Shown here: positions 24,051 to 53,654 of the stretch, piece by piece | Layout of the letters: every line of letters starts with the position of its first letter | Numbering within the stretch: the stretch's first letter is position 1 | Source: Monocercomonoides exilis PA203 | Lineage: Eukaryota; Protista; Preaxostyla | Length of the DNA: 64,000 nt | Assembly: GCA_001643675.2 (NCBI GenBank) | Contig: LSRY02000043.1 | Coordinates: 682,001 to 746,000, forward strand | Direction of reading: 5' to 3' | Program-made: the position numbers and the translations under genes | Notes under the pieces: model-generated | The model's database searches: none | What the model saw: only the letters and a program-made list of their open reading frames with translations | What the model was told of the DNA's origin: nothing

Positions 24051-24292
24051 TGTCAAAATTTTTTTGAAAACTTCCATTTGTTTAATTTTCAAATAAAGAA
24101 AAAATTTCAAATTTCGATCAAATTTCTGTTCCCACTTACCGAATTTTGCTGTCATGAAAACATAATCTTGACAATGTTATTATTTTATTTTAAGTGAAGT
24201 TTCGTAAGTGGGAACAGAAATTTGATCGTAATATAAAATTTTTTCTTTATTTGAAAATAAAACAAAAGGAACTTTTCAAAAAAATTTTGACA
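24051..24292. repeat. ~240-bp fold-back family copy B (right end of DD35D element 2)
   Basis: 24051-24143 pairs with 24201-24292. Arms align with copy A. The loop 13-mer at 24189-24201 is the reverse complement of 21808-21820. Confidence 0.88.
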
Positions 24293-28200: not shown

Positions 28201-31200
28201 GCATTTGCCTTGGAGCCTGGACTGAAACAGTCGCAGACTTGTGTGTTTGAAGTCGAAGGGGAAGGGAATGGTGCGCTGACGCTCTCTTCATCGCGGGTGA
28301 GCGGCGATGCGGATGTGCTGTCTGTCCCGTTCTGTTTTGTGTGCGTGAGAAAGGGGAAGATGCTGATGAGCAGTGTTGTTGTGGAGCATTTGTGCTTTTT
28401 GGTAGAGCCGTTTGTGAGGTGCAGCGGAACGGAGTCTGAAGCGGTGATGATGCAGGCAACGTTCGCTGACACGACAAGCGGGGGAGAAGAAGGGTTGATT
28501 GTGCTTCGCGATGGCTCCACGGCAAAAATCAGCAAGAGTGCGTTTGAAAGCAGCAGCGGAAGCAAGCAGCCGATGATTGTTGTGAACAAAGCCAGGAAGA
28601 CCAATGTGAGCGAGACAAGCGTAGACTGCTCTCTTTCTGGTCAAGGAGATGGGTGTTTCCTTCGCGGAACGCTGGGAGTGGGGTGCGAAATGGCTGTAGA
28701 TGGAGGAAACATGAGTGGGACATGCCCAAGAGGAAACGGGGGAATGCTGAGACTGGTGCTGGAAGGTGGAAGCAAGCTGCAGATTGGAAGAAGCATGGAG
28801 ACGATTGTGAGCAAGTGCAAAGCAGTTTTTGCAGCAGGGAGTGGGGGTGTGGAGGAGGGATGTACTTGGAGACAAATAGCAGTGACGTGGAATTGGGGCT
28901 GAATGCAGTGAAGTTTGATGGATGTCAAGCAGACAGGCATGGACACAATCTGTTTTTAACAGCCCCCAACTTCACAGCTTCTGTGACAAAAGCCACACTC
29001 GGATTTGTGGCTGACACCACAAATGAAGAGGAGCTTGAGGGATATGAAGGAGGAAACAGCACATATGCAATCCCGTTGGTGCTGTATCTGCGGGACGACC
29101 CTGAGCCAGTTATGGTTGGTGGAGATAACAAAAAAGATTTCGACAGATGTGGATATGCTGGACACGGGTGCGAAACGATGGACTTTGTGATGGCTCGGTG
29201 GGTGGAGGAAAACGGACTCAACGCATCAATATCAAACACTGTGCCGCTATACTCGGAGGCAAGTCTTGTCAGCGGAGTATTTGTGCTGAACGGCACATCA
29301 GTATATTCTCAAATAGACGTGTACGAAAATGCTGCAAAGAAACAGGATGGGATGATAGAGACAAGCTGTGCGACAACATTTACGGGACTGAAGATTACTG
29401 GGCCAGCGAGCTTGAACACGAGGTTTTATCTAATATGCACGAAAAGTGGAGTCTTGACATTGAGCTCGTGCGCTCTGAGTGTACGCTCGTCACTCACAGC
29501 TGCATATTCCATGATCGCCTGCACAGGAGGGCAGACAACGTTGAATGATGTGACCATCAGGAATGCTGTGTGTGCGTGTGGAGCCATGATTTGGATCACA
29601 GGAGAAGGAAGCTGCACCATGGATGAATGCACAATGATGAATGCAAAGGGTTCGGAAGCAACAGATGGATGCGTTGTCTATGCATCATCTGGCACTCTGG
29701 AAATAGGAAACACGACATTTTCAGAGGAAGGGGCAGATGACAGATCAGGCAGCGCGAGGCTGGCAGATAAGCTGGGAAAGTGGATGGGAGTGAGGAACTG
29801 CACGTTCAGAGGCTTGTCAAGGAACGGAGAAAAAGGATGTGTGCTGTTTGGGATGTTGGATGAAGGGATGGTGCTTGAGCTGAACGATGTGAACATGGAG
29901 AACTGCACTGTGAGTGGAGGAAGCGGAGGAGGATGCTTTGTGGAGTTGTCGAAGACAGCAAGACTTCGTGTCGGAGAGAGTGGGAATAGAATGCTGGCTG
30001 AAGGATGCCGAGCGCTGGCTGGCGAAGATGGCGGATTGAAGGGATTTGGAGGAGGAATGCTGGTGAAGTGCATTGAAGAGGCAAGTGATATGATAATTGC
30101 GGGGGTGAAATTTGGAGAAGGGGAAAAAGCGAACATGGCTGACAAGGGAGGAAACAATGTGTTTGTTTCGTGTGTGAATTTATCAATGGTGGTGAATGAA
30201 GGCTCGTTCAACTTTGACTTTTTGAAGAAAGTTGAAGAGTCGCCCAGGCTGTGGGATTTGATGGGGATGGAAAATGGAGCAAGAGAGAATCCGATTCCGC
30301 TTGTTGTGTTCTTTCGAGAAAGCGCAGGGAATGTGTTTGTTGGAGACAAAGGGTGCGATTATGTATTATGCGGATTTGAGGATTATCCGTGCAGAGGAAT
30401 TGTGCATGCTGCAGCACTGCGAAAAGGATCGGAAAACGTGGTGGTTACGCTTCTTGCAGACTTTGGGTTTTGCGATTCCATAATTCTGGATGCTCAAGAA
30501 ATGACCATCAACACCCAAGGCAACAGCCACGAAAGAATGGTCCATGGAGAAGGAGAAGGAGAATCCAACTGGTTGATAGAGACCAAAAAGAACATCACTT
30601 TTGAAGATGTCTCATTTGGGATGCCGCCTTCATTTAACTGCCAACGTGAAAGCTTTCTGAAGTGCAGAAAAGACAAACTGGAGCTCAGAAGGTGTTTGGC
30701 GAAGGTTGATGCAGACTCAAGGAGGATTGATTATTCATTTGTTAGTGTGGAAGGAGGGATGCTTGTGATGGATGATTTTTCAGCGATGGAGTTGTGTGCT
30801 GTGCAACATGGGCTTGTGGATGGAAGAGGGCTGGACTCAAAAGTGGAGCTAAGTGGGGTGAAGTTTGAGGGTGTTTCTGTGGAAGGAGAAAGAGGAGTTG
30901 TGTGTGGGCAAAGCTGTGGATTGCTCAGCATGAATGATTCTTGGATGAATTCGTCTGCTCTTGGAGACAGCTGCTTGGTGTGGTTTTGCGGGTGCGAATC
31001 CGTTAACATGAAAGGGCTGAGCATCTGGAATGTGTCGAGAACAGCAGGGAGTGGAGGGGCATTCAGTGGAGAAATAGGAGAAGGGTGCAAGTGCGAGATC
31101 CGTGGGAGCACATTTGGCAATGTGAGTTGTGGGGAGCATGCTGGAAGGGGAGGGTGCGGAGCTGTGGAGGTGATGAGAAATGGGAAGCTGATTATTGAGG

Positions 31201-34200
31201 GGTGCGTTTTCGAAAAAAACGGAGTGGACGAAGAAGCAGGGTTTGGGGGAGGGTTGTTTGCTCGGTTTGTGGATGTGAGTGTAAAGTACAGCATGAAGCA
31301 CAACACATTTGCAGAGAACAAAGCAAGCGTGGGGAAAGATGTGTATGTGATTTGCCCGCAGGCGAGAAAGATGCTGTATCAGGAGTTGTGGGAAGGAACA
31401 GTCGAAGAGGATGATGAAAAAGAGCGGTTTTGGGTTTATGATGAGAGTTCTGGAGTGGTAATCAACACTTCGATATTAGTTATGCTTTTTCCGGCAGGCG
31501 AGGAGATTGTATTTGTTGATGGAACAGTGATAAATTCAGAGGGGTGTGGTCACGAAGAAACACCATGTGGCGATGTGTTGCATGGGTTCAAAGCAATGAA
31601 CGAAAATCAGACCACAATAAGGATTGTGTCGGGTACATTTTTGGGATCAGTTATTGATCGAGACTCATCGCTCGCAATTGAAGGGGCAAAGGCGATTCAC
31701 CCAGAGCTGGAGATAAAGCAAAGCGGGCAGCTATGTGTGTCTCATGATAACATATCTCTTACGCTTCGAGGCTTGACTTTCAGATTTGCAACAGAACTTT
31801 CGCCAGCATTAACTTCTTCACAATTATCTTCGGCATCTTCTTCTGCGTTGAGTTCTGTCTTTGCCATCAGTTGCGGACGATGCGCAGTGACGGATTGTGC
31901 ATTTGGAAGAGGAGGCGAAGGAGAAGGAGATGAAGACCAATCAGAGGTGACAAGATGGCTGGTATATGAAACCGGAGGTGCAGTTGAGATGAGTTCTGTT
32001 CGGTTTGAAAGTGTTGATTTTTGCAATGAATGCGGGATTGGGCTTTGCCTTGGCGGAGAAATGGTTTGCCAAAACGTCACAATTTCCCACATTGCAACAG
32101 ATGGCCCGAATATATTTGAAAGCAGAGGCAATGCTCTGGTGGAATTCAGCATGATGAACGTGAGCCATGCAAGAGCAGAGAAAGGGCGATTTGTCACTGT
32201 GAAGGAAGGGTCGAGCTTGATGATGGGCGAGGAGTGTGCGCTTGAGGGTTGTGGGCGAAGTTCAGTGAATGGGAGTTTTGCTTGCTGCGAAATGAGCAAG
32301 GAAGCAGAGCTGAAGATAGAATCTGGGGCAATGAGTCATTGGGCATGCGACAATGAGAAAGGTTATGGAGGATGCCTGTTCGTCAAGCTGTGTGCCGGGT
32401 TTGGTGGAGATTTTTACTTCAAAAATATTCAGTTGAGTGAGAATGATGCCTTTGGGGGGAAGGACATGTTTGTGGAATGTGTAGAACTAAATGCATCGGT
32501 GACACAAGAAAGGTTCAGGTTTGAGCTGGCAAGTGGGAGCGACGGGAAGGCTGCTGATCTGAAGGGTATTGATGCAATGCGCTTTCCCTCTCCAGTGGAT
32601 TTGAGGCTATTTCTTATTCAGGCGCACTGCATGCAGGCTGTTGTGTCCAGCGAAGGGTATGACACTTTGGGCTGCGGGGTGCTGATGCATCCCTGCCAGT
32701 CATTTTGGAGAGGCTATTGCAACACGCAGGCAGACGCAGATCCAAAGGAGCTGGCAATACAGGAGGGTGCAACAGTCAGTCGCGGATACGATATGTCTTC
32801 ATTTGTTGTTGCTTCGTTGCCAGCAGAAGAATACAGCAAACTGCACATTTCACATGATATCCAGGATGGGATATCTGGTGCAGTGTTTTGGAATGCCAAG
32901 GCGCTGTTGTTCCGCACAATCATATTCTCATTTCCCCCAACAGCATCATCTGCCGTTCGTTCGATGATTGCTTCGTCGTCTGCAAGCTCTTTGCTGTCGA
33001 TTATCAACTGCTCCATATCCAAAGCGAGTGACGCTGCAGTTCAATATGTGGCTGTATCAGTCACAGGGGGCGAGCTTGTTATTGAAAGCAGTTCGTACAC
33101 ATCGTCTGGCGAGTATGCTTCTGCTCCCTTTTCTGTTCGTGGCACAATGTGTGCGATAAACAGCTCATTCAGCACGGCTCAAACGAGATCAAGCAAGGAA
33201 GGAGGGCTGATGCAAATCAAAACGAGTGGCGGTGATTCGGTAAAGATGGAGGGATGCACACTGGAAGGGTGTGCATGCACTGAAGAGAATGGGAAAGGGG
33301 GCGCTTTGTATGTTGATGGGAAAGAAGCCGTTCAGTCTAATTGTTTGCTGCTGAAAAGTGTCGATTTTGCAGCGAATCATGCACAAATCGGGGAGCACAT
33401 GTTTGTTGCGTGCAAAGACCTGAATGCTACAGTGACAAAGTCGAGCTTCATGTTTTCGTTGGATTTTGTCAAGGAAGATGACAATGGGCTGATGGGAAGC
33501 GATGCAGTGCATAATGAAACAACGCTTCTGAGGTTTCTTGTGCAGTACAAAGGAAGCACAGTGCACATTGCTCGAGCCGGGTACGACTTGTTGCGATGTG
33601 GAGGAGCAGAGGATCCGTGCAGGAGCTGGACTCACGGGGTGAAGCAATTTGAGTCAGAGTCCCCCACAAAAATAGTTGTGATCGATGGAGGCTGCAACTA
33701 CAAGGAGAATGGGGTGCTTTCGGATTATGAAGTGAAGTCGATTGGGGAGGAAGAAGAGGAGCAATCAAGAGCTGAGCTTTGCGTCGTGCAGGGCGATGAC
33801 GAACAACATGACGTGTGCATGCGAAATGCAAGGGTGCTTTGTTTTGAAAAGATCTCGTTTGTTGTGGCAGAGGGGTTTTCAAACGAGGAAAACGGGGTGA
33901 TTGTCAGCGAAGATGGGAACTTGAGGTTGACGAGCTGCGAGGCTTGGATGAACGGCAGAGCTTTGCTGGAAAACAGCGCTTCATTTGTCGTTGTGCTGAG
34001 AGGGGCTGTGCTGCTGGAAGGAATGACAGTGAGCCGCTCATCGTTTGGAAGAAGTTTGATGGAAATAGCGTCTCATGTGGATTGTGTGTTGGATTCTGTC
34101 AGTGCAGAATTGATAAATGTTGAAGAAGGATGCATAATTAGCATGAGAGATGACGACTCTGAGCAAATGAACAGCAAAAACGCTGGAGCAGGGATTTCAT

Positions 34201-37200
34201 TAAACAAGTGCTCATTCAAGAATATCACAAACAACGGAGAGAGCGGAAGCGTTGTGGTTGTTGGAGGAAGAGGCAGTGGAAGCAAACTTTGCATTAATTC
34301 GAGTATGCTTGAAATGTGCACAAGCAGCAATTCGCAGAAAGGAGGGGCAATTCTGTTTCGATTGAGCTCTGGCGGATGCTTGGACGTGAGAGGCTCAACG
34401 ATTGGGCTGTGCAGCTGTTCGGCACAGAATGGGTGTGGAGGCGGCTTCTATGTTGAGGCTGTGCATGCAGGAAGCCTGAACATGCTTTTTGCTAATATCA
34501 AGTTCGACTCGAACATTGCGCATATCGGGAGGGATTTGTTTGTGGAGTGCAACAACATCAGAGAGCAGATCAACGAGACGCAGTTCCAGTTTGATCTGAG
34601 AGAATCGAAGTACAACAGTCTGAATGCAATATTTGGAATAGACAGAGCAGAGTTGTGTGTGGAGGCAGTGAATCTGATTGAGTTTATTGTGATATATCAG
34701 AATGACACGATCTTCACGAGCTCGGATGATGGATCAGCAAGTGAAGACAGCAAAAACTGTGGAACTCAGGCGCTTCCATGCTTGTCGGTCGGGTATGCAG
34801 TCGACCATCTCACATATGACTTTGAAAGCCAGATTGTGGTTGTCGGGGAAGGGTTGATTGGAAAGGAAGTGGACGTGGCAAATGTATCGATACGATCGCG
34901 GGGATCAGAGACTGCACTTCTGCGCATTGGTTTGCAACTGGAATGCACACGCCAGTATGTGGTGCTGTGTTCGGAGGCAGTTTTCTTCAGGGGGATTTCG
35001 TTTGTTGTTTGTGCAGAGAGCATGCATGGTCATGGATGCTTTGTAGAGTGCAGCCGAGGCACAACACAAATGACAAGGTGCTCGTTTCGAAATGATGCAG
35101 AGATGGGCAATTCCACCAAGATAAATGCCATTTTGGTGCAAGTGGAGGCAAGGGGATGTCTGCAACTGGAAAACACAACACTGAGGCAGATATCGTCAGA
35201 ATGTCCGCTGATAGCATGTGAAGGACAATCAACGCTGCGCTGCACTTCTCTGATCATGGAATCGCTTTTCTGTGCATGTGATGCGATTCTTGTAAAAGAA
35301 TGCGAATTATTGGGCATGGAAAAAGTCGAGTGCCATGATGTTGTGTGCAGCAGTGGAGCGCTGTTTGCCTTTCAGGGAATAAATGCTGGTGAGAGGAGTG
35401 GAAACAGTGAAGAATACTCTCTTTCAATGGGCTCATTTAAAAACATATCAGTCGAGGCAAGAAAGCAAACACTTTTCTGTTTTACGCGCTTAACAAATCT
35501 GCGAATGCGAAACATCACTTTTAGCAGATGCTCGGCACTTGTGCAGAATGGCATGTTGCTATCTTCTGATAGATGCCATGAAACAGAAATTGAATACTGC
35601 CGCTTTAGCGAGAAAGGAATGGACGACATCGTGGAGTCAAAGACGCCAAGAAGCGAGATATGCAAATGGAATGGATCACTAGTTGCCCTGCAACAGTCTG
35701 AGACAATAATAAGAGGCACCACCATATCAGAATCGCCAATCGGGGGATTATTTGTGTCTGGAGGGAATGTGATGATAGATCAAGGGGAGTTTCGGGACAA
35801 CAATGCAAAGGTGAAAGGATATCCATCTGCACGAAAAAATATAGCATGCGCTGATCGTGGCATGCTGTCAATCGCAAGCCTGAAAGGAGGAGACGGCATG
35901 TTGCCAAGCACATCCATGTGGATTGCAAATAGCAATTGTGTGCTTGGTGGAATTGCTTCAGAGCGAGCATCATCATTTTTTATCCCTGTGCTAGAGTCGG
36001 TGAAGATGGAAAAAGGAGAAATTACAACAGAGCTCACATTCATCGGAAAGCTTCTTCTTCCGTGCAATCTGACGGTTCAGATAGCTTTTTCAATTGGAAG
36101 TGAGTCTCAAATAGAAAAGCAAAATATGAATGAGAGCAACTACAAATCTGAAACTGAGATTCACAGCTGGATATCTTCCACAAAAATAAATGGAGTATCG
36201 GAAGAGGTTGAAGTGTCAGTGTGCATTCTGTTTGGAGACGAGAGCATTCGGCGACCAACTGATTCTTTCATCCTGAAGAACAGAAGCGAGCCCAAATCAA
36301 ATGGAGATGAAAGAATTGTTGAAGGAGGAAACAAAGAAAAATCGATATGGCCAATTGTGGTTGTAATTTTGGCTATTATATTATTGTTTGTAATAATTGT
36401 TTCTGTGGTATTTGCAGTGAGATGGAGAAAGCAGAAGAGAAGGACAAAGAGCTGGAGGTGATTGTGGAAGACACAGTGAAGAAGGATCCGAAAGCGTTTG
36501 AGATGGTGACGATGGAGATGTCACCCGAGGAGCAGTGGAGGAGAGCTGAGAGGGAGGCAGAGAAGAAGAATGAAGAGAGGATAAAGAAGAGAGTGTATGA
36601 GAAAAGCTTGGGACATTCAGAGTCATCAGAGCATTTGTTGAGTGAGAGTGGCTCAACAGAATACATCTTGGGGAGAGATTCAGACAAGATCCCTCAATGG
36701 ATGCTTGAGAAGGTTGATGAGGAAGAGACGAGGAAAAGAACACCATCGCCATCCATTTCATCCACCTCAACAACAGACACTTCAGACACAGAATCCACTT
36801 TTGTTCGAGGAGAGGATCTGTGTCCAACCACCTCATCCATGTCGAATCTGGTGGATGCAATGGCCTGTTCATCGCCGCATGAGAAGCTCATTGTGGACTT
36901 GAGGGATTCGCTGTTCATGCTGCTTCATGGAAGGAATGAGAAGAAAGAGATGGCGATAGGCACTCTGCAAGAGAGGGAGGTCTCTGCTGCTCAGATCCTG
37001 TTCTGGGTGGCCAATCTTGCTCTCCACTCATTTGACGAAATGAACAATCCTCTTTCATCTCTTGCCAACCTCAGCCCTCACATCGTGCTGTTTTCTGAGC
37101 ACATGGTGATCTGCATTGCCCTCCACTCCGACTGCTCCTCAGGCTCAGACACTTCATCCACTTTTTCTTCCACCTCGACAATTGTCACCTCTTCCTCAGA

Positions 37201-37681
37201 TTGCTCAGCCATCAACAAGAAAGGCCAAGGCTCACCACCACCACCTTCATCAGCATTTGAGGATGAGGATGACAACCGGAAAGAGTGTCTGCGGTGGAAG
37301 GCGCCAGAGCTGCTGATGAACAAAGATCTGGGAGCCACAAAGAAGACAGTTGTGTTCTCGATTGGGATGATGCTGTGGGAGAGTCTGACGCTGGAGATCC
37401 CGTTTGGCGAGTATGAAGCAGAGGTGGCGGGGATGTGGCTGAAAGAAGGAAAGCGGCCGAAGACGGGAGGGCTGGAAGGGAGCAGGCTGGAAGGGCTGGT
37501 GAAAGGGTGCTTTTCGCAAGAGGCGAGGGACAGATGCACTCTGACAGATGTGAAGCGGGTGCTAATTGGGTTGTTCCCGGCCGGGACAGTCATGCTCACA
37601 GTGACCGATGCGATTGGGCTGGAGGAAGGATCAGGAAGCTACAGGAAATACAGCAGGTTCAGTGGGGAAGGAAGCAACTGA
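25282..37681 (+). CDS. giant type-I membrane protein (~4133 aa): Cys/Gly-rich beta-helix-like ectodomain, TM helix, TK/TKL-like pseudokinase; left copy, two 1-nt frameshifts (~28845, ~36446)
   Basis: Signal-peptide-like start, repeated GGA(I/L) and FxxN motifs, eight CGx5C modules, TM IWPIVVVILAIILLFVIIVSVVFAV, then LRWKAPE and VFSIGMMLWE..EIPF. Both frameshift sites are intact in the other arm. Confidence 0.88.
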
Positions 37682-39180
37682 GAAGGCAGAAATTAAAGTG
37701 AGCGTGATTTTGACGGATGAGCATAACAATGTTTGAAAATGGAATGACAAAGAAAAGAGAAATGGAAAAAGAAGAGGCTGGTGGAATTGGTCACACAAGA
37801 TTTCACAGATAGAAGATCCATTGAAGAAGCATTGGAAGCAAATGAATGGATGGATTGCAGTCGTTCCATTTTGTGTGACGAATATGGTGAGATGCCCGTC
37901 ATCACGCACAATTGCGATATCTGCTTGAATTTATCTGGCTCTCTTTTCTTTTCTTTCTTTTATTTTTTCCTTTATATTTTTTGTTTGTGAAGAAAGGATT
38001 TCTTCTACGTGCCTTTTCTTCTATTGGCTGATTCATGGCATTTGCACGCATGTGCCACATACACTCTGCATTTCAGCACATGTCTATTTTTGAGGCATTG
38101 GCTTTCTTCCAAGTTGAATTATGTTATTAATAGAATTTTTCATTTCAAAGAAATTCACCAAAAAAATGATTCAAAATCGGGAGAAAAAATCAATCAAGAA
38201 AGCACGACTATGCTTCAATAAAATTCTATGTTTTAACTAAATATAAATTCTATTGTTTTTTCCTATTAAAAATCAAATAATAATTTTTTCTTTTATTTTT
38301 ATTTTTATTTTTTTATTTGTTAATTCAATGCTTAATTTAATGATGATATTAGAAGCAATATTCCACACTTTTTTGGATGTTATTTAATTGTTTGACTGTT
38401 AGCATACAAACAAAAGTATTTCTGAAATTGCATTGAAAAAAATTTCCAATTCATTTTAATAAAATTCAACAAGCCAATTTGTGATTATATTTTTTATTAA
38501 AAAAACAAGATAGTTATTTGTATTAAAAAATTATTATTAAAATAATTTTTAGTCTGTTCGCGTGTGAAAAAGTTTTCAAAAATAGCAAGCAAAAGTGTTT
38601 GTGCACATAATTTTTCGTTGGCACTTCATCAAAAGAAATAATTGTTTATCATCGAAACTTTATTATTTTAATTTCCGAGAGTGTATTGCATAAAAGAAAC
38701 GGAATAGAAAAATTCACACAAAATTTAGTGAGATTGCGTTCATAATTATTTCAATCTGAAAATCAATATGAATATATTTCACTTGATTCTGATTTTTTTT
38801 AAAAGAGAAAAATATATCATTTTTTTTAATATCACATTTTTCTGATTTTAAAATTCACTCAACCAACTTCGTTGAATTCCCAACAAATATTTCAAAATTT
38901 GCATTCAAAATTCAAAGTTCTTGAACCATGATAATATCAATAAATTCAGAAAGAAATGATAAATATCAGCATTATAGGAACTTAAAAATTTTATGGTAAA
39001 TTATGAATATGACAAACGATTATCAACACTTTTCTCAAAATGATTATTTTCTTTTGTTTTTTTTGAATGTTTTTCGAATGAATCAATTCTCTTAATTGCT
39101 ATTTATTTCTTTCCTTTCAAAAATGAAATGTATTTCACCTGTGTGATTGTTTCAAAAATCAAACCATTTTTTCTGAAAAT

Positions 39181-39413
39181 TGGGTTATTCTTTTTGAAAA
39201 GTCGCAAATATTCAATTAATTTTGATTAATATAGAAGCCTCCATTTTGATCAATGTTGAGAACTGATCTGTCAAATAACAAAACTATTCTTTCAATTTCA
39301 TGTTAACAATAAGAAATTATCTGTTTTTAACTTGGTGCTCGCTTTCATCATAAATCATTTCTAATTAATCAGGATTAATTGAATATTTGCGACTTCTCAA
39401 AAAGAATAACCCA
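39181..39413. repeat. ~240-bp fold-back family copy C at the axis of the giant palindrome
   Basis: 39181-39209 is identical to 21717-21745. The 50-bp arms 39181-39230 / 39364-39413 carry three mismatches. Confidence 0.85.
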
Positions 39414-40909
39414 ATTTTCAGAAAAAATGGTTTGATTTTTGAAACAATCACACAGGTGAAATACATTTCATTTTTGAAAGGAAAGAAATAAATAGCAATT
39501 AAGAGAATTGATTCATTCGAAAAACATTCAAAAAAAACAAAAGAAAATAATCATTTTGAGAAAAGTGTTGATAATCGTTTGTCATATTCATAATTTACCA
39601 TAAAATTTTTAAGTTCCTATAATGCTGATATTTATCATTTCTTTCTGAATTTATTGATATTATCATGGTTCAAGAACTTTGAATTTTGAATGCAAATTTT
39701 GAAATATTTGTTGGGAATTCAACGAAGTTGGTTGAGTGAATTTTAAAATCAGAAAAATGTGATATTAAAAAAAATGATATATTTTTCTCTTTTAAAAAAA
39801 ATCAGAATCAAGTGAAATATATTCATATTGATTTTCAGATTGAAATAATTATGAACGCAATCTCACTAAATTTTGTGTGAATTTTTCTATTCCGTTTCTT
39901 TTATGCAATACACTCTCGGAAATTAAAATAATAAAGTTTCGATGATAAACAATTATTTCTTTTGATGAAGTGCCAACGAAAAATTATGTGCACAAACACT
40001 TTTGCTTGCTATTTTTGAAAACTTTTTCACACGCGAACAGACTAAAAATTATTTTAATAATAATTTTTTAATACAAATAACTATCTTGTTTTTTTAATAA
40101 AAAATATAATCACAAATTGGCTTGTTGAATTTTATTAAAATGAATTGGAAATTTTTTTCAATGCAATTTCAGAAATACTTTTGTTTGTATGCTAACAGTC
40201 AAACAATTAAATAACATCCAAAAAGTGTGGAATATTGCTTCTAATATCATCATTAAATTAAGCATTGAATTAACAAATAAAAAATAAAAATAAAAATAAA
40301 AGAAAAAATTATTATTTGATTTTTAATAGGAAAAACAATAGAATTTATATTTAGTTAAAACATAGAATTTTATTGAAGCATAGTCGTGCTTTCTTGATTG
40401 ATTTTTTCTCCCGATTTTGAATCATTTTTTTGGTGAATTTCTTTGAAATGAAAAATTCTATTAATAACATAATTCAACTTGGAAGAAAGCCAATGCCTCA
40501 AAAATAGACATGTGCTGAAATGCAGAGTGTATGTGGCACATGCGTGCAAATGCCATGAATCAGCCAATAGAAGAAAAGGCACGTAGAAGAAATCCTTTCT
40601 TCACAAACAAAAAATATAAAGGAAAAAATAAAAGAAAGAAAAGAAAAGAGAGCCAGATAAATTCAAGCAGATATCGCAATTGTGCGTGATGACGGGCATC
40701 TCACCATATTCGTCACACAAAATGGAACGACTGCAATCCATCCATTCATTTGCTTCCAATGCTTCTTCAATGGATCTTCTATCTGTGAAATCTTGTGTGA
40801 CCAATTCCACCAGCCTCTTCTTTTTCCATTTCTCTTTTCTTTGTCATTCCATTTTCAAACATTGTTATGCTCATCCGTCAAAATCACGCTCACTTTAATT
40901 TCTGCCTTC

Positions 40910-43900
40910 TCAGTTGCTTCCTTCCCCACTGAACCTGCTGTATTTCCTGTAGCTTCCTGATCCTTCCTCCAGCCCAATCGCATCGGTCACTGTGAGCATG
41001 ACTGTCCCGGCCGGGAACAACCCAATTAGCACCCGCTTCACATCTGTCAGAGTGCATCTGTCCCTCGCCTCTTGCGAAAAGCACCCTTTCACCAGCCCTT
41101 CCAGCCTGCTCCCTTCCAGCCCTCCCGTCTTCGGCCGCTTTCCTTCTTTCAGCCACATCCCCGCCACCTCTGCTTCATACTCGCCAAACGGGATCTCCAG
41201 CGTCAGACTCTCCCACAGCATCATCCCAATCGAGAACACAACTGTCTTCTTTGTGGCTCCCAGATCTTTGTTCATCAGCAGCTCTGGCGCCTTCCACCGC
41301 AGACACTCTTTCCGGTTGTCATCCTCATCCTCAAATGCTGATGAAGGTGGTGGTGGTGAGCCTTGGCCTTTCTTGTTGATGGCTGAGCAATCTGAGGAAG
41401 AGGTGACAATTGTCGAGGTGGAAGAAAAAGTGGATGAAGTGTCTGAGCCTGAGGAGCAGTCGGAGTGGAGGGCAATGCAGATCACCATGTGCTCAGAAAA
41501 CAGCACGATGTGAGGGCTGAGGTTGGCAAGAGATGAAAGAGGATTGTTCATTTCGTCAAATGAGTGGAGAGCAAGATTGGCCACCCAGAACAGGATCTGA
41601 GCAGCAGAGACCTCCCTCTCTTGCAGAGTGCCTATCGCCATCTCTTTCTTCTCATTCCTTCCATGAAGCAGCATGAACAGCGAATCCCTCAAGTCCACAA
41701 TGAGCTTCTCATGCGGCGATGAACAGGCCATTGCATCCACCAGATTCGACATGGATGAGGTGGTTGGACACAGATCCTCTCCTCGAACAAAAGTGGATTC
41801 TGTGTCTGAAGTGTCTGTTGTTGAGGTGGATGAAATGGATGGCGATGGTGTTCTTTTCCTCGTCTCTTCCTCATCAACCTTCTCAAGCATCCATTGAGGG
41901 ATCTTGTCTGAATCTCTCCCCAAGATGTATTCTGTTGAGCCACTCTCACTCAACAAATGCTCTGATGACTCTGAATGTCCCAAGCTTTTCTCATACACTC
42001 TCTTCTTTATCCTCTCTTCATTCTTCTTCTCTGCCTCCCTCTCAGCTCTCCTCCACTGCTCCTCGGGTGACATCTCCATCGTCACCATCTCAAACGCTTT
42101 CGGATCCTTCTTCACTGTGTCTTCCACAATCACCTCCAGCTCTTTTGTCCTTCTCTTCTGCTTTCTCCATCTCACTGCAAATACCACAGAAACAATTATT
42201 ACAAACAATAATATAATAGCCAAAATTACAACCACAATTGGCCATATCGATTTTTCTTTGTTTCCTCCTTCAACAATTCTTTCATCTCCATTTGATTTGG
42301 GCTCGCTTCTGTTCTTCAGGATGAAAGAATCAGTTGGTCGCCGAATGCTCTCGTCTCCAAACAGAATGCACACTGACACTTCAACCTCTTCCGATACTCC
42401 ATTTATTTTTGTGGAAGATATCCAGCTGTGAATCTCAGTTTCAGATTTGTAGTTGCTCTCATTCATATTTTGCTTTTCTATTTGAGACTCACTTCCAATT
42501 GAAAAAGCTATCTGAACCGTCAGATTGCACGGAAGAAGAAGCTTTCCGATGAATGTGAGCTCTGTTGTAATTTCTCCTTTTTCCATCTTCACCGACTCTA
42601 GCACAGGGATAAAAAATGATGATGCTCGCTCTGAAGCAATTCCACCAAGCACACAATTGCTATTTGCAATCCACATGGATGTGCTTGGCAACATGCCGTC
42701 TCCTCCTTTCAGGCTTGCGATTGACAGCATGCCACGATCAGCGCATGCTATATTTTTTCGTGCAGATGGATATCCTTTCACCTTTGCATTGTTGTCCCGA
42801 AACTCCCCTTGATCTATCATCACATTCCCTCCAGACACAAATAATCCCCCGATTGGCGATTCTGATATGGTGGTGCCTCTTATTATTGTCTCAGACTGTT
42901 GCAGGGCAACTAGTGATCCATTCCATTTGCATATCTCGCTTCTTGGCGTCTTTGACTCCACGATGTCGTCCATTCCTTTCTCGCTAAAGCGGCAGTATTC
43001 AATTTCTGTTTCATGGCATCTATCAGAAGATAGCAACATGCCATTCTGCACAAGTGCCGAGCATCTGCTAAAAGTGATGTTTCGCATTCGCAGATTTGTT
43101 AAGCGCGTAAAACAGAAAAGTGTTTGCTTTCTTGCCTCGACTGATATGTTTTTAAATGAGCCCATTGAAAGAGAGTATTCTTCACTGTTTCCACTCCTCT
43201 CACCAGCATTTATTCCCTGAAAGGCAAACAGCGCTCCACTGCTGCACACAACATCATGGCACTCGACTTTTTCCATGCCCAATAATTCGCATTCTTTTAC
43301 AAGAATCGCATCACATGCACAGAAAAGCGATTCCATGATCAGAGAAGTGCAGCGCAGCGTTGATTGTCCTTCACATGCTATCAGCGGACATTCTGACGAT
43401 ATCTGCCTCAGTGTTGTGTTTTCCAGTTGCAGACATCCCCTTGCCTCCACTTGCACCAAAATGGCATTTATCTTGGTGGAATTGCCCATCTCTGCATCAT
43501 TTCGAAACGAGCACCTTGTCATTTGTGTTGTGCCTCGGCTGCACTCTACAAAGCATCCATGACCATGCATGCTCTCTGCACAAACAACAAACGAAATCCC
43601 CCTGAAGAAAACTGCCTCCGAACACAGCACCACATACTGGCGTGTGCATTCCAGTTGCAAACCAATGCGCAGAAGTGCAGTCTCTGATCCCCGCGATCGT
43701 ATCGATACATTTGCCACGTCCACTTCCTTTCCAATCAACCCTTCCCCGACAACCACAATCTGGCTTTCAAAGTCATATGTGAGATGGTCGACTGCATACC
43801 CGACCGACAAGCATGGAAGCGCCTGAGTTCCACAGTTTTTGCTGTCTTCACTTGCTGATCCATCATCCGAGCTCGTGAAGATCGTGTCATTCTGATATAT

Positions 43901-46900
43901 CACAATAAACTCAATCAGATTCACTGCCTCCACACACAACTCTGCTCTGTCTATTCCAAATATTGCATTCAGACTGTTGTACTTCGATTCTCTCAGATCA
44001 AACTGGAACTGCGTCTCGTTGATCTGCTCTCTGATGTTGTTGCACTCCACAAACAAATCCCTCCCGATATGCGCAATGTTCGAGTCGAACTTGATATTAG
44101 CAAAAAGCATGTTCAGGCTTCCTGCATGCACAGCCTCAACATAGAAGCCGCCTCCACACCCATTCTGTGCCGAACAGCTGCACAGCCCAATCGTTGAGCC
44201 TCTCACGTCCAAGCATCCGCCAGAGCTCAATCGAAACAGAATTGCCCCTCCTTTCTGCGAATTGCTGCTTGTGCACATTTCAAGCATACTCGAATTAATG
44301 CAAAGTTTGCTTCCACTGCCTCTTCCTCCAACAACCACAACGCTTCCGCTCTCTCCGTTGTTTGTGATATTCTTGAATGAGCACTTGTTTAATGAAATCC
44401 CTGCTCCAGCGTTTTTGCTGTTCATTTGCTCAGAGTCGTCATCTCTCATGCTAATTATGCATCCTTCTTCAACATTTATCAATTCTGCACTGACAGAATC
44501 CAACACACAATCCACATGAGACGCTATTTCCATCAAACTTCTTCCAAACGATGAGCGGCTCACTGTCATTCCTTCCAGCAGCACAGCCCCTCTCAGCACA
44601 ACGACAAATGAAGCGCTGTTTTCCAGCAAAGCTCTGCCGTTCATCCAAGCCTCGCAGCTCGTCAACCTCAAGTTCCCATCTTCGCTGACAATCACCCCGT
44701 TTTCCTCGTTTGAAAACCCCTCTGCCACAACAAACGAGATCTTTTCAAAACAAAGCACCCTTGCATTTCGCATGCACACGTCATGTTGTTCGTCATCGCC
44801 CTGCACGACGCAAAGCTCAGCTCTTGATTGCTCCTCTTCTTCCTCCCCAATCGACTTCACTTCATAATCCGAAAGCACCCCATTCTCCTTGTAGTTGCAG
44901 CCTCCATCGATCACAACTATTTTTGTGGGGGACTCTGACTCAAATTGCTTCACCCCGTGAGTCCAGCTCCTGCACGGATCCTCTGCTCCTCCACATCGCA
45001 ACAAGTCGTACCCGGCTCGAGCAATGTGCACTGTGCTTCCTTTGTACTGCACAAGAAACCTCAGAAGCGTTGTTTCATTATGCACTGCATCGCTTCCCAT
45101 CAGCCCATTGTCATCTTCCTTGACAAAATCCAACGAAAACATGAAGCTCGACTTTGTCACTGTAGCATTCAGGTCTTTGCACGCAACAAACATGTGCTCC
45201 CCGATTTGTGCATGATTCGCTGCAAAATCGACACTTTTCAGCAGCAAACAATTAGACTGAACGGCTTCTTTCCCATCAACATACAAAGCGCCCCTTTCCC
45301 ATTCTCTTCAGTGCATGCACACCCTTCCAGTGTGCATCCCTCCATCTTTACCGAATCACCGCCACTCGTTTTGATTTGCATCAGCCCTCCTTCCTTGCTT
45401 GATCTCGTTTGAGCCGTGCTGAATGAGCTGTTTATCGCACACATTGTGCCACGAACAGAAAAGGGAGCAGAAGCATACTCGCCAGACGATGTGTACGAAC
45501 TGCTTTCAATAACAAGCTCGCCCCCTGTGACTGATACAGCCACATATTGAACTGCAGCGTCACTCGCTTTGGATATGGAGCAGTTGATAATCGACAGCAA
45601 AGAGCTTGCAGACGACGAAGCAATCATCGAACGAACGGCAGATGATGCTGTTGGGGGAAATGAGAATATGATTGTGCGGAACAACAGCGCCTTGGCATTC
45701 CAAAACACTGCACCAGATATCCCATCCTGGATATCATGTGAAATGTGCAGTTTGCTGTATTCTTCTGCTGGCAACGAAGCAACAACAAATGAAGACATAT
45801 CGTATCCGCGACTGACTGTTGCACCCTCCTGTATTGCCAGCTCCTTTGGATCTGCGTCTGCCTGCGTGTTGCAATAGCCTCTCCAAAATGACTGGCAGGG
45901 ATGCATCAGCACCCCGCAGCCCAAAGTGTCATACCCTTCGCTGGACACAACAGCCTGCATGCAGTGCGCCTGAATAAGAAATAGCCTCAAATCCACTGGA
46001 GAGGGAAAGCGCATTGCATCAATACCCTTCAGATCAGCAGCCTTCCCGTCGCTCCCACTTGCCAGCTCAAACCTGAACCTTTCTTGTGTCACCGATGCAT
46101 TTAGTTCTACACATTCCACAAACATGTCCTTCCCCCCAAAGGCATCATTCTCACTCAACTGAATATTTTTGAAGTAAAAATCTCCACCAAACCCGGCACA
46201 CAGCTTGACGAACAGGCATCCTCCATAACCTTTCTCATTGTCGCATGCCCAATGACTCATTGCCCCAGATTCTATCTTCAGCTCTGCTTCCTTGCTCATT
46301 TCGCAGCAAGCAAAACTCCCATTCACTGAACTTCGCCCACAACCCTCAAGCGCACACTCCTCGCCCATCATCAAGCTCGACCCTTCCTTCACAGTGACAA
46401 ATCGCCCTTTCTCTGCTCTTGCATGGCTCACGTTCATCATGCTGAATTCCACCAGAGCATTGCCTCTGCTTTCAAATATATTCGGGCCATCTGTTGCAAT
46501 GTGGGAAATTGTGACGTTTTGGCAAACCATTTCTCCGCCAAGGCAAAGCCCAATCCCGCATTCATTGCAAAAATCAACACTTTCAAACCGAACAGAACTC
46601 ATCTCAACTGCACCTCCGGTTTCATATACCAGCCATCTTGTCACCTCTGATTGGTCTTCATCTCCTTCTCCTTCGCCTCCTCTTCCAAATGCACAATCCG
46701 TCACTGCGCATCGTCCGCAACTGATGGCAAAGACAGAACTCAACGCAGAAGAAGATGCCGAAGATAATTGTGAAGAAGTTAATGCTGGCGAAAGTTCTGT
46801 TGCAAATCTGAAAGTCAAGCCTCGAAGCGTAAGAGATATGTTATCATGAGACACACATAGCTGCCCGCTTTGCTTTATCTCCAGCTCTGGGTGAATCGCC

Positions 46901-49900
46901 TTTGCCCCTTCAATTGCGAGCGATGAGTCTCGATCAATAACTGATCCCAAAAATGTACCCGACACAATCCTTATTGTGGTCTGATTTTCGTTCATTGCTT
47001 TGAACCCATGCAACACATCGCCACATGGTGTTTCTTCGTGACCACACCCCTCTGAATTTATCACTGTTCCATCAACAAATACAATCTCCTCGCCTGCAGG
47101 AAAAAGCATAACTAATATCGAAGTGTTGATTACCACTCCAGAACTCTCATCATAAACCCAAAACCGCTCTTTTTCATCATCCTCTTCGACTGTTCCTTCC
47201 CACAACTCCTGATACAGCATCTTTCTCGCCTGCGGGCAAATCACATACACATCTTTCCCCACGCTTGCTTTGTTCTCTGCAAATGTGTTGTGCTTCATGC
47301 TGTACTTTGCACTCACATCCACAAACTGAACAAATAACCCTCCCCCAAACCCTGCTTCTTCGTCCACTCCGTTTTTTTCGAAAACGCACCCCTCAATAAT
47401 CAGCTTCCCATTTCTCATCACCTCCACAGCTCCGCACCCTCCCCTTCCAGCATGCTCCCCACAACTCACATTGCCAAATGTGCTCCCACGGATCTCGCAC
47501 TTGCACCCTTCTCCTATTTCTCCACTGAATGCCCCTCCACTCCCTGCTGTTCTCGACACATTCCAGATGCTCAGCCCTTTCATGTTAACGGATTCGCACC
47601 CGCAAAACCACACCAAGCAGCTGTCTCCAAGAGCAGACGAATTCATCCAAGAATCATTCATGCTGAGCAATCCACAGCTTTGCCCACACACAACTCCTCT
47701 TTCTCCTTCCACAGAAACACCCTCAAACTTCACCCCACTTAGCTCCACTTTTGAGTCCAGCCCTCTTCCATCCACAAGCCCATGTTGCACAGCACACAAC
47801 TCCATCGCTGAAAAATCATCCATCACAAGCATCCCTCCTTCCACACTAACAAATGAATAATCAATCCTCCTTGAGTCTGCATCAACCTTCGCCAAACACC
47901 TTCTGAGCTCCAGTTTGTCTTTTCTGCACTTCAGAAAGCTTTCACGTTGGCAGTTAAATGAAGGCGGCATCCCAAATGAGACATCTTCAAAAGTGATGTT
48001 CTTTTTGGTCTCTATCAACCAGTTGGATTCTCCTTCTCCTTCTCCATGGACCATTCTTTCGTGGCTGTTGCCTTGGGTGTTGATGGTCATTTCTTGAGCA
48101 TCCAGAATTATGGAATCGCAAAACCCAAAGTCTGCAAGAAGCGTAACCACCACGTTTTCCGATCCTTTTCGCAGTGCTGCAGCATGCACAATTCCTCTGC
48201 ACGGATAATCCTCAAATCCGCATAATACATAATCGCACCCTTTGTCTCCAACAAACACATTCCCTGCGCTTTCTCGAAAGAACACAACAAGCGGAATCGG
48301 ATTCTCTCTTGCTCCATTTTCCATCCCCATCAAATCCCACAGCCTGGGCGACTCTTCAACTTTCTTCAAAAGTCAAAGTTGAACGAGCCTTCATTCACCA
48401 CCATTGATAAATTCACACACGAAACAAACACATTGTTTCCTCCCTTGTCAGCCATGTTCGCTTTTTCCCCTTCTCCAAATTTCACCCCCGCAATTATCAT
48501 ATCACTTGCCTCTTCAATGCACTTCACCAGCATTCCTCCTCCAAATCCCTTCAATCCGCCATCTTCGCCAGCCAGCGCTCGGCATCCTTCAGCCAGCATT
48601 CTATTCCCACTCTCTCCGACACGAAGTCTTGCTGTCTTCGACAACTCCACAAAGCATCCTCCTCCGCTTCCTCCACTCACAGTGCAGTTCTCCATGTTCA
48701 CATCGTTCAGCTCAAGCACCATCCCTTCATCCAACATCCCAAACAGCACACATCCTTTTTCTCCGTTCCTTGACAAGCCTCTGAACGTGCAGTTCCTCAC
48801 TCCCATCCACTTTCCCAGCTTATCTGCCAGCCTCGCGCTGCCTGATCTGTCATCTGCCCCTTCCTCTGAAAATGTCGTGTTTCCTATTTCCAGAGTGCCA
48901 GATGATGCATAGACAACGCATCCATCTGTTGCTTCCGAACCCTTTGCATTCATCATTGTGCATTCATCCATGGTGCAGCTTCCTTCTCCTGTGATCCAAA
49001 TCATGGCTCCACACGCACACACAGCATTCCTGATGGTCACATCATTCAACGTTGTCTGCCCTCCTGTGCAGGCGATCATGGAATATGCAGCTGTGAGTGA
49101 CGAGCGTACACTCAGAGCGCACGAGCTCAATGTCAAGACTCCACTTTTCGTGCATATTAGATAAAACCTCGTGTTCAAGCTCGCTGGCCCAGTAATCTTC
49201 AGTCCCGTAAATGTTGTCGCACAGCTTGTCTCTATCATCCCATCCTGTTTCTTTGCAGCATTTTCGTACACGTCTATTTGAGAATATACTGATGTGCCGT
49301 TCAGCACAAATACTCCGCTGACAAGACTTGCCTCCGAGTATAGCGGCACAGTGTTTGATATTGATGCGTTGAGTCCGTTTTCCTCCACCCACCGAGCCAT
49401 CACAAAGTCCATCGTTTCGCACCCGTGTCCAGCATATCCACATCTGTCGAAATCTTTTTTGTTATCTCCACCAACCATAACTGGCTCAGGGTCGTCCCGC
49501 AGATACAGCACCAACGGGATTGCATATGTGCTGTTTCCTCCTTCATATCCCTCAAGCTCCTCTTCATTTGTGGTGTCAGCCACAAATCCGAGTGTGGCTT
49601 TTGTCACAGAAGCTGTGAAGTTGGGGGCTGTTAAAAACAGATTGTGTCCATGCCTGTCTGCTTGACATCCATCAAACTTCACTGCATTCAGCCCCAATTC
49701 CACGTCACTGCTATTTGTCTCCAAGTACATCCCTCCTCCACACCCCCCACTCCCTGCTGCAAAAACTGCTTTGCACTTGCTCACAATCGTCTCCATGCTT
49801 CTTCCAATCTGCAGCTTGCTTCCACCTTCCAGCACCAGTCTCAGCATTCCCCCGTTTCCTCTTGGGCATGTCCCACTCATGTTTCCTCCATCTACAGCCA

Positions 49901-52900
49901 TTTCGCACCCCACTCCCAGCGTTCCGCGAAGGAAACACCCATCTCCTTGACCAGAAAGAGAGCAGTCTACGCTTGTCTCGCTCACATTGGTCTTCCTGGC
50001 TTTGTTCACAACAATCATCGGCTGCTTGCTTCCGCTGCTGCTTTCAAACGCACTCTTGCTGATTTTTGCCGTGGAGCCATCGCGAAGCACAATCAACCCT
50101 TCTTCTCCCCCGCTTGTCGTGTCAGCGAACGTTGCCTGCATCATCACCGCTTCAGACTCCGTTCCGCTGCACCTCACAAACGGCTCTACCAAAAAGCACA
50201 AATGCTCCACAACAACACTGCTCATCAGCATCTTCCCCTTTCTCACGCACACAAAACAGAACGGGACAGACAGCACATCCGCATCGCCGCTCACCCGCGA
50301 TGAAGAGAGCGTCAGCGCACCATTCCCTTCCCCTTCGACTTCAAACACACAAGTCTGCGACTGTTTCAGTCCAGGCTCCAAGGCAAATGCCACAAGTGAT
50401 ATCTGCACACTGCTCCCCACCTTCACCATCTCGTACAGCCCACTCTCGTTCCCAACCATCCTCACCTCCGACATCCCTTCTTTCCCGCTCAAGTCATATC
50501 CCTCTGCTCCATCAAGCACCAGGCACTCTCTCCATGTGTAGCTCTTGTTGTACAGCACCAGATGCATCCCTTCCTGCTGCCCAAATGCATAGTCCATCGT
50601 CTTGCACTGATACTTTGCAAATCCACATGCACTCACATCCACTCCCCCGTCTCCCACACTCACTCGCACTTCTCGCAGCTGCAGGAAATACACCAGCGGG
50701 ATTCCAATATTCGGTGTTCTTCCATCTTCTCCCTGCATCTCTTGCTCCGAGAAATACTCTGGATAGAACGGAAAATGTGCTTGAACAGTGCTTTTCTTGA
50801 GGTCCGGAGATTTGACAAACACATTTCGCCCCCAATCCGCATTGTTCTCCTCAAACAACGGGCGAGCCACACAGAAGTCTTCGCCTCCATCCTTCAGCAC
50901 CAAACATATCCCTCCACCTCTGCTCTCTCCAGCAAAACCTCCTTCCCCACTCCGTTCTGCCCAGCATTGCTTCATCCCTGTGACTGAACTTTCTGATCCT
51001 ATTCTCGCACAGCTTCCTCCAACCATCTCCACCCAAATCGCTCCGCCATCCCCCGCACTGCACCTGCACCCGTTCATCGTCACATTCCCAAACTCAAACA
51101 TCTCTCCTGCCTCCAACGCCTTCTCTGCCACTGCCCCGTTTCCATTTCTTCTCGTTATCTGAGTTATATTCCCGCCTCGAACACAAACACTTCCTCCAGC
51201 ACTCCACATCAGCAGACTGCACCCTTCCAGACACACATTCTCCACTTGGCAGTCCTCGATAGCAATCTCTCCCCTCCCTGCCACAAAAAGCGGCTCGTGA
51301 AACGACAAATCCACAGAGTCCGCTTGTATCGTGCAATTCTTTACATGCGCCAAACCCTCATACCCATCCACTGCAAACAGAGACGAACCCCTCGAATTTC
51401 CTGTATCATGAATCACTGTCCACCCCTCCAACTCCAGCTTCCCGCTCCCCACACTGAACAGCGAGCCGCTTTCCACATCCGACCGAATCGTTCCATGTTC
51501 CATTGCTGCATCTTTGCTTATGCAAATCTCCAGCCCGGAGATGCTCACAGCCTTCTCCACACTCACCTCGCTGCACACCACAACCCCTGTGTGTCTGTGG
51601 CTCACCCACTGTGTCACCGCAAACGCGATTGTCCTGCACTCTGCTCCATTCTCCCCACATCCTGCATCATCACTTCCCCTATCTGAGTCGACTCTCAGAG
51701 GATCGTACACTGCAGGCACATCTGGGAGCCACCCTGCTTTGTCTCCGTTGCAATACACTCGCCCAATCTGACTTGATGTCGAATATGAATATATTATCCA
51801 TTCTTTTGTTGCATTTACTGAATTGTTTCCTCCGAATGTTATATCATGACCTCTATTATCAAAAGATGTGTTGTTTTCAAATAAACAATATATAATATGA
51901 TTTGTGCTGTTTGCATCTCCGTCAATATTCACTGTTCCAGCGAATGTTGAAAGAGCTTTTGATTGAAGAAAAAAACAATTATCCAATATGTTATTTGTTT
52001 TTGTAAAAATAATATGAATAGATCCTCGACAGTCCTGAGCTTCACATTTCTTAAAGGAACAGTTTATCACATCAACATTGTTATTTAATTCGACATTTAA
52101 TGCACCTCCAGAAAGTGAATGACATTTATTAAAAGAGCAATGAATAATAATTGGATCTTTATTAAAAATTGATAATGCACCACCAATTGGAGACTTTGAA
52201 GAACATTCACAAAAACAACAATCGAATAATGAATCGACAGTTAAGCATTTTCCATTTCCAGAATAATGAACAGCACCACCTCTTGGATAAGTTGTACCAC
52301 AATAAGTTATTGAGCAATTTGTGAAAGTGCAACTTCTGAGTGTCAGAGAAGCACTCCCACCAACATTTAGTGCGCCTCCATTCCGTGTCGCTGATGTGCA
52401 TGATTCAAATCTGCAACTGTCGAACTCTATTTGTCCACTCGAAAACGAAGGCAGTGAAGCGTTGAAGCATTGATCCTTTTGAATGTCATGCGATCTGAGA
52501 AACGAAGAGTTGAACACGACTAACTTTGCGAGCCTCGTTGCACTCTCATCAACACTCAACAGTGATTGGTCACAGTCAACCAGCAAGATGCTGGAGACAA
52601 GAGATTTCTGGAGATGGTTTGCTTCTGAGAAAGCAGTGGTGCTGCTGTGTGCAATGTTTGTTGACGCATTCATAAACACCACGTTTTCCATCGACGTGTG
52701 CAAAAGAGACAGCGAACCAAACACAGACAAGAAGGGTGGAGTCGACAAGCACGAAAACGAAGTGTCTGACAAAAAGGCTTTGCCACAGCCAATTTCGCCC
52801 TCTGCACTTTCTTTCCACTCAACAAGCGATGAAATCGAACGGTTTTGTGTTCGGAACAGCAAACTCAAATTGCAGATCTCAATCCGTCCGCCTTCTGCTT

Positions 52901-53309
52901 CACAAAATCTGGAAATCGCCTTTGCCCCAAATGACACAGAAACCTGCTTCAGAAAAAGAGACGAACAAGATGTCACTATCTGACACTGTCTTCCTGTGGG
53001 AAAGAAGGTGAGTTTTGAGGCACAAAAAGTGCTGTTGTGCATTTCAATAAATGTGTCGATGGTCGAAGACACCGGCTTTGTGAAGTTCTTTTCCGCAATT
53101 TCGTTTTCGTGTTTCAAATTTGCATCTTCATCAACTGCAATGGACGGAGCACTTCTTTCTACTGAAATCGGTCCATTATCCATCTCGTCAAGGCCAAAGG
53201 AAACAACCCTCTTGCTGGCACTTTTTGAAAGATATTCAATTCTTGTGTTGGCGGCTAATTGAAAGGATATGGAAATGAATGCAGATATCAGCAAGCACTT
53301 GTCGAGCAT
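40910..53309 (-). CDS. right copy of the giant receptor-pseudokinase; two different 1-nt frameshifts (~48368, ~45291)
   Basis: ORFs 48366-53309, 45238-48369 and 40910-45286 mirror the left copy. Confidence 0.88.
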
Positions 53310-53654
53310 GGAAACTTAAAACAGAAATTAGAGTTTTTTTCAAAATTGGGTTTTTGATAACCCATTCTTTTCCCTTATTTTTCTGATGAACTTTTTTGTT
53401 CTTAAAATTTAAATGTAAAAACATTCAAAAAACTCAATTGATTGATAGTAATTTTGCAAGAGCAGAAAATAGGTGTAACCAAAACACTTTATTCAAATCA
53501 CTCTTTCGTCACGATTTTCATTCAACATGATTTTTTTTTTAAAAAAATATCAAATTTGGAATATGAAGAGATCAACAGAATTGGAATTTTTTTTTTGTGC
53601 TTTTTTCTTTATTGGTACCAAAATTTTATGTAATGAAAAAACGTTAAAAACACA

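Follow-up and report, generated by a model that had tools for sequence, protein, structure and literature searches.

A MITE at the exact centre of a 28-kb receptor-gene palindrome in Monocercomonoides exilis: probable seeding by one fold-back duplication and upkeep by arm-to-arm gene conversion

The window analysed here is a stretch of 64,000 nucleotides on contig LSRY02000043.1 (about positions 682,001-746,000; assembly GCA_001643675.2) of the gut protist Monocercomonoides exilis. It contains a palindrome of 28.2 kb, whose arms face each other across a short asymmetric spacer (Table 1). Each arm carries one giant receptor gene of about 4,100 codons, whose product has a single membrane helix and, at the C terminus, a kinase-like lobe. 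Homopolymer indels break the left copy at 28843 and 36446 in the assembly, and the mirror copy elsewhere; frameshifts at different homopolymers in each arm are expected from unpolished nanopore errors in exact repeats. The assembly was built with Canu from R9.4.1 nanopore reads with an N50 of 8.9 kb and polished with a PCR-free Illumina library (PMC8767320). The library methods list no whole-genome amplification, and the palindromes go unmentioned in the genome paper, in which neither "palindrom" nor "invert" occurs (PMC8767320). Below, the window locus (L003) is called palindrome A, its near paralog palindrome B, and a one-armed paralog at L010 copy C.

Table 1. Coordinates of palindrome A, its axis element and related elements, numbered from the first letter of the window.
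Feature	Position	Strand	Description
Left arm, palindrome A	25220..39230	+	14.0 kb
Right arm, palindrome A	39364..53371	-	14.0 kb
Outer edge, A left arm	25220..25262	+	Variants 25247, 25251 and 25262 in common with the matching B arm
Outer edge, A right arm	53329..53371	-	Truncated relative to the right arm of palindrome B
Receptor gene, left copy (MONOS_16618)	25282..37681	+	Giant, single-pass, C-terminal kinase-like (PF07714) lobe
Receptor gene, mirror copy (MONOS_16656)	40910..53309	-	Homopolymer indels at 48371 and 45294
Axis MITE	39182..39412		231 bp, G...C termini, AATT at both flanks; ancestral form 253 bp with ~70-bp TIRs
Left TIR, still-paired part	39182..39230	+	Ancestral-TIR homology continues to ~39250
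Asymmetric spacer	39231..39363		133 bp: MITE interior plus unpaired 20 bp of the left TIR
Right TIR	39364..39412	-	Shortened by a 20-bp deletion at ~39359, palindrome A only
Related MITE	21718..21957		240 bp, first 37 bp as in the axis element, ATAT duplication; beyond the pogo 3' end
Related MITE	24052..24291		240 bp, AAAT duplication, within the 5' subterminal region of pogo; empty site in L005
Related hairpin MITE	55330..55572		Damaged left end; adjoins the 5' region of a second pogo copy (53655-55255, minus strand)
Degenerate pogo-type (DDE_1) transposon	22006..24336	-	Own short TIRs; the hairpin ends are not derived from it

Between 25270 and 39170 the arms of palindrome A differ by only five substitutions over 13,895 bp. 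Taken over their whole length, the differences comprise seven homopolymer indels, five substitutions at 31256-31493, five in the outer 45 bp (25239-25262) and three in the inner 50 bp, so that an earlier note on this DNA, which recorded only homopolymer differences outside the short inverted repeat, needs correction. The substitutions at 31256-31493 (mirror 47098-47335) are all private to the right arm of A, with four of them inside 27 bp, and this cluster is a small recent patch awaiting conversion. About 55 bp upstream of the receptor start codon, in both A and B, lies a small inverted motif, TGGGTT...AACCCA (25227-25244 and 53347-53364), which is possibly a promoter element. The arms were also considered as copies of one giant transposon ending at the outer TGGGTTAT. 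This candidate was rejected because the arms of palindrome B run past TGGGTTAT, which makes the motif merely sequence upstream of the start codon.

The element at the axis is short and non-coding and has terminal inverted repeats (TIRs), as expected of a MITE. Its offset from the palindrome centre is zero (39182 + 39412 = 38370 + 40224), and it folds computationally into a hairpin of -47.3 kcal/mol (z -9.6). The 29-bp identity reported earlier between 39181-39209 and 21717-21745 is exact, and 35 of 37 positions match up to 39217; the three substitutions counted in the 50-bp inner arms are likewise present, at 39198/39396, 39221/39373 and 39222/39372. The agreement with a family size of ~233 bp is partly accidental: the element measures 253 bp in B and C, 20 bp of the right TIR are gone in A, and the other hairpins of the window measure 240 bp. 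Only the first ~37 bp are shared by the axis element and the MITE at 21718-21957, and by a shuffle test the axis interior is unrelated to those of the other hairpins of the window. The axis-type interior was seen in A, B and C only; in most copies of the family the interior is of the 21718 type. Two of the three TIR substitutions consist of the right TIR retaining the state of copy C beside the 20-bp deletion, and only 39396 is private to A. An assignment of all three to changes in A was withdrawn, since copy C has the right-TIR state at two of them. The TIR differences of A mark where conversion fails and have no value for dating the repeat. A spacer contig of run X3 ends at 39395, one base short of the A-specific 39396, and run X2 reads through this position; the stop is possibly variation within the culture.

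Every intact hairpin begins with G, finishes with C and is flanked by AWWT 4-mers (ATAT, AAAT, AATT). The target duplication is demonstrated for the MITE inside pogo: deleting the hairpin together with one AAAT restores the pogo alignment, and L005 has the empty site, to within one homopolymer A. Elements of this type are common (~11 in 181 kb of sampled DNA) and dispersed, with many contigs ending with unrelated flanks at 39180/39181 in four of four public runs. A 4-bp AWWT duplication is a hallmark of Sola1 (PMC3845634). The Sola1_NA elements of Bombyx mori and Rhodnius resemble the present family in AWWT duplications, a length of 200-350 bp and hundreds of copies, and the silkworm TIR shares with it, in a likeness that is short, a GG start and TTTTGAAA at positions 11-18 in the same register (PMC3845634). 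In contrast to Sola1_NA, the TIRs here are longer (70-95 bp), and no autonomous partner with such TIRs was found here. The axis element is a complete MITE, and it is Sola1-like in two tested features, the AWWT duplication and the start of the TIR.

The earlier note had taken the axis for a transposon-end hairpin, possibly cut by its own DD35D transposase; the transposon in question would be pogo. Hairpins do lie near two pogo copies of the window, and in its first 7 bases the MITE TIR is similar to the termini of M. exilis pogo elements of the Tc1-mariner DDE_1 type (GGGTYAT), which leaves a small doubt about the separation of the two families. However, the intact pogo copies L001 and L002 have different, short TIRs that start with GGGTYAT, TA duplications and no hairpins; in an alignment to these copies the degenerate pogo of the window covers about 22006-24336. 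Among the MITE ends examined none has the TA flank of pogo ends, the 4-mers being AWWT instead. The hairpins of the window lie inside or outside the pogo ends, and one, whose empty site is preserved in a paralog, interrupts the 5' region of a pogo copy. The hairpins are independent MITEs that insert into pogo, their reading as pogo TIRs is rejected, and a pogo terminus at the axis is scarcely credible.

Further mobile elements occur in the window and in the sampled loci. A second hairpin family of 360-400 bp, with ends TACAG/TACTG ... CTGTA, is present at 13247-13608, where the copy is a near-perfect fold-back, and at L001 5411-5774 and L009 7678-8077. A DIRS-like tyrosine-recombinase retroelement with RT, RNase H and integrase domains and split terminal repeats occupies 6859-12900, and an ISXO2/Merlin-like transposase fragment and a 21-bp tandem array with an inverted partner are found at 14618-15112 and 15798-16616. 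Another pogo family is represented by two copies (782-1810 and 56311-57335) that are 93% identical and lack hairpins at the 3' end.

Palindromes of this kind may arise as artefacts, when nanopore fold-back reads at a hairpin make a false mirror arm. The Canu assembly of R9.4.1 reads lends itself to this reading, as the read N50 is smaller than one arm and palindrome B splits the assembly into three contigs. However, unique DNA follows the right arm of A, variants peculiar to this arm recur in the right arm of B, and homopolymer errors are separate in each arm. In run X3, A-specific arm contigs have about twice the depth of the spacers (122-135 against 45-64 for three spacers), which is support and not proof, since contig depth is no true copy number and all runs come from one sample. 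Arm depth was taken from A-specific contigs only: an X3 contig of depth 313 was dropped, and its interpretation as six arms withdrawn, because it includes high-copy TIR words. The spacer of A is recovered without differences in contigs of two 2022 public runs (39246-39402 and 39246-39395). Among the contigs listed none bridges the right junction of A, and no read was seen to run from the axis to the outer edge. The artefact reading is largely refuted and very improbable, the right-arm variants shared with the paralog being a stronger argument than depth, and palindrome A is regarded as real.

Close copies of the receptor gene led to palindrome B, which is distributed over the end of contig 43 (LSRY02000043.1, L005), the whole of contig 87 (LSRY02000087.1, L006) and the start of contig 32 (LSRY02000032.1, L004/L007), 147 kb from A at the contig end. 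Its axis is the same element in a 253-bp form with ~70-bp TIRs, and the spacer is common to A and B. The B arms, which are well polished and present in three contig copies, differ by less than 0.1%, and the B spacer is at single-copy depth; B is thus probably one locus that broke the assembly, and contigs 43, 87 and 32 probably join through it. With respect to the pogo-side flank, the L006 spacer has the opposite orientation, which reflects either a flip-flop isomer or an assembly ambiguity.

Comparison of the two palindromes separates the age of the arms from their identity. A and B differ at 309 fixed positions in 13,387 sites, each difference being present in both arms of its copy, and also by a swapped block of 400 bp and an indel of 600 bp that both arms of each carry. 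The divergence is 0.036% between the arms of A against 2.3% (fixed) between A and B. At the outer sites 25247, 25251 and 25262 the variants sort by arm, the left arm of A agreeing with the left arm of B and the right with the right. Both arms thus predate the split of A and B, which stem from a single palindrome, and their near-identity has been maintained. In palindrome B, the 33 sites of an outer island (24538-24876) have been homogenised even though the island is cut off from the main arm by a non-homologous block and by sites that escaped conversion, a pattern that requires patchy gene conversion and not one recent re-copy from the axis. The arms of each palindrome are kept alike by patchy arm-to-arm gene conversion, from which the spacer, the outer edges and sites beside indels escape. 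A recent origin, once inferred from arm identity, was rejected on the 309 A-B differences found in both arms. For the same reason the dating argument of the earlier note, three substitutions set against identical arms, falls, because arm identity reflects gene conversion; its conclusion that the short inverted repeat is older than the long arms nevertheless stands.

Several other exchanges are visible between the copies. The 400-bp block (26300-26720 and its mirror) lies in the ectodomain, is swapped in frame between A and B, diverges much more than the sequence on either side and does not differ between the two arms of each palindrome; it is a conversion from another paralog. At 38524 and its mirror, both A arms are without ~600 bp found in B and C, including a 257-bp MITE flanked by AWWT. 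The left flank of A (24920-25225) matches the right arm of B (L004 9636-9945) at 99% and the neighbouring 340 bp differ by about 10%, which possibly indicates exchange between the two palindromes. The homology between the B right arm and the left flank stops at a TA beside the pogo 5' end (L004 8772; window 24337). Between the receptor codons of A (25282-37681) and B (L005/L006) there are 98 silent and 119 replacement differences in ~3,950 codons, which as a rough estimate indicates moderate purifying selection.

Copy C lies on the same contig, 233 kb upstream. It contains a receptor gene end, the 3' flank known from B and A, at a divergence of 2.5-4%, and likewise the 253-bp element. A simple repeat and unique DNA come next, and no mirror arm occurs in the following 18.7 kb. 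A pre-duplication allele, which the earlier note had proposed to look for, would have just this composition of 3' flank, element and unique sequence. The variants of C match a third spacer type in the reads, and C-specific arm contigs of run X2 are at single-copy depth. The C element lies between AATT and AAAT, which would be a perfect duplication but for one mismatched base. The tree of the three copies built from the 3' flank is unrooted, with branches of 29, 10 and 36 sites for A, B and C, so that "C ancestral" rests on parsimony; on this sequence comparison the one-armed C is favoured by parsimony as the ancestral state. The right flank of C matches neither outer flank of A or B, and the original distal DNA is therefore untraceable to the second junction.

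The arrangement suggests, with a probability of roughly 0.7, that the MITE seeded one fold-back duplication, that the resulting palindrome was copied whole into A and B, and that its arms were then kept by conversion. In this sequence of events, a Sola1-like MITE first inserted downstream of a giant receptor gene, 1.5 kb away, as the intact element and its AWWT flanks attest. A break on the far side of the MITE would have been followed by resection, after which the two ~70-bp TIRs may have annealed, within one strand or between sisters, and the 3' end would have copied the gene-side flank, as the zero offset and the one-armed C suggest. A second junction at least 14.9 kb (about 15 kb) out, now eroded, may have stabilised the interstitial palindrome, which would have formed once and then been copied whole to give A and B. 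The break could have been spontaneous (at the hairpin or a stalled fork) or a one-ended transposase cut, and the data fit both; a transposase, if involved, would have been the MITE's own enzyme and not that of pogo. Several steps have precedents: a break near an inverted repeat of 42 or 79 bp gives such palindromes in yeast and hamster (CHO) cells (PMC7999016), fold-back flaps are trimmed by polymerase delta (PMC10622511), and annealing of inverted repeats can occur within a strand or between sisters (PMC6103520). The proposal of the earlier note that a dispersed hairpin element nucleated the inverted duplication is, given the zero offset and the one-armed L010, the most likely one. Here the short inverted repeat is kept at the exact centre and also exists without a mirror arm in C, as expected of a fold-back-primed duplication. 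Given one element per 16 kb and a window of 5-10 bp, a MITE would be centred in this way by chance at about 1 in 1,500 to 3,000 axes. Since MITEs are common any break has one nearby, yet this abundance fails to explain the zero offset.

The main rival explanation reverses the order of events. The palindrome would have come first, and either the MITE landed in the AATT at the centre of a palindrome that was perfect or nearly so, and stabilised it, or inward conversion of an old convergent paralog pair reached the MITE. In either case copy C would have been derived by loss of one arm precisely where the element ends. Because the 4-mer AATT is its own reverse complement, the flanks of A cannot separate insertion from fold-back and a single locus is insufficient for the decision, and the flanks of C mismatch by one base. 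The far end of the B right arm, only ~82-85% like the left flank, also speaks against the fold-back reading and could be a relic of an older pair, and at L011 convergent paralogs have an inner part made identical by conversion. Against this order, an extra event is needed, the loss of an arm precisely at the TIR end, and the left flank of C ends in register with the simple repeat on the right, as an ordinary target would. Inward conversion moreover predicts no zero offset, and L011 and L008 keep unique spacers of 0.9 and 1.4 kb. A palindrome older than its MITE is therefore considered unlikely, and fold-back at the MITE remains the preferred reading. Under fold-back, the far-end divergence of B may be older than the split of C, and a convergent paralog could already have been present.

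Whether this origin belongs to a recurrent process is a separate matter. The candidate TE-seeded amplification system of the earlier note is not supported, as the traced copies go back to one event and two of two unrelated receptor palindromes lack the motif. At L008 (5633-8525) a head-to-head receptor palindrome surrounds a 1.4-kb unique spacer and has a 257-bp MITE in each arm, not at the axis. At L011 (8907-14758) tail-to-tail receptor paralogs are about 70-75% alike outside, with inner parts of 2.1-2.3 kb that are identical and a unique spacer of 0.9 kb; this is homogenisation without fold-back. No MITE ends were found at the inner edges of the L008 and L011 palindromes, and L009 contains no palindrome. 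Programmed amplification would entail a dedicated break signal and recurrence at each locus, and neither was seen in this small sample. A system in which the cognate Sola-like transposase cuts one MITE end, repeatedly making palindromic amplifications, mostly of receptor genes, is attractive in that a one-ended cut would leave a flapless 3'-terminal TIR, an ideal primer. It is quite improbable, however, with the MITE retained intact and showing no excision footprint, A and B deriving from one event, no cognate transposase identified, the two unrelated palindromes lacking the motif, and MITEs so common. As a wider conjecture, Sola-like MITEs might act as a recurrent genome-wide source of stable, heritable gene palindromes, perhaps through one-ended cuts by their own transposase, with the MITE interior as the minimal spacer on which survival of the palindrome depends and arm conversion maintaining the pair; this is rather doubtful but, if true, would constitute a transposon-driven route for the expansion of a giant receptor-kinase family.

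The palindromic rDNA of Tetrahymena is primed by a short inverted repeat, next to a programmed break site. In contrast, the M. exilis locus has no programmed break site. Transposons at duplication junctions are also produced by hybrid-element insertion of the Drosophila P element. Alternative transposition and hybrid-element insertion of maize Ac equally place a transposon at the junction (PMC3744419), but in these reactions an end is joined to a new target and the duplication is offset or direct, whereas in M. exilis the mirror symmetry sets in with the very first base next to the TIR. The fold-back palindromes studied experimentally keep a short inverted repeat with an asymmetric loop at their centre, and 70 bp is within the tested range (PMC7999016, PMC10622511, PMC6103520). 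Unlike in those experiments, the palindrome described here is natural, interstitial and heritable, its repeat is the TIR pair of a transposon, and its second junction is old and eroded. In their later history, palindromes A and B resemble P6 of the human Y chromosome: arms more than 99.9% identical, whole copies 2.3% apart, patchy tracts, a spacer and edges that escape conversion, and a spacer orientation that may flip (PMC3723533). In contrast to sex-chromosome palindromes, the spacer measures 113-133 bp and not kilobases, the chromosome is an ordinary protist one and the cargo is receptor-kinase-like (PMC3723533).

The mechanisms are thus known ones, and the locus, rather than a new amplification system, is an unusually well-documented natural case of a break-repair palindrome. 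Most of what is known about fold-back at short inverted repeats comes from engineered strains and tumours, and here one chromosome keeps the likely states before (C) and after (A and B) the event. A 28-kb palindrome with a spacer of ~130 bp has persisted in a protist to a divergence of 2.3% under arm conversion, as a warning that arm identity is unusable for dating such palindromes.
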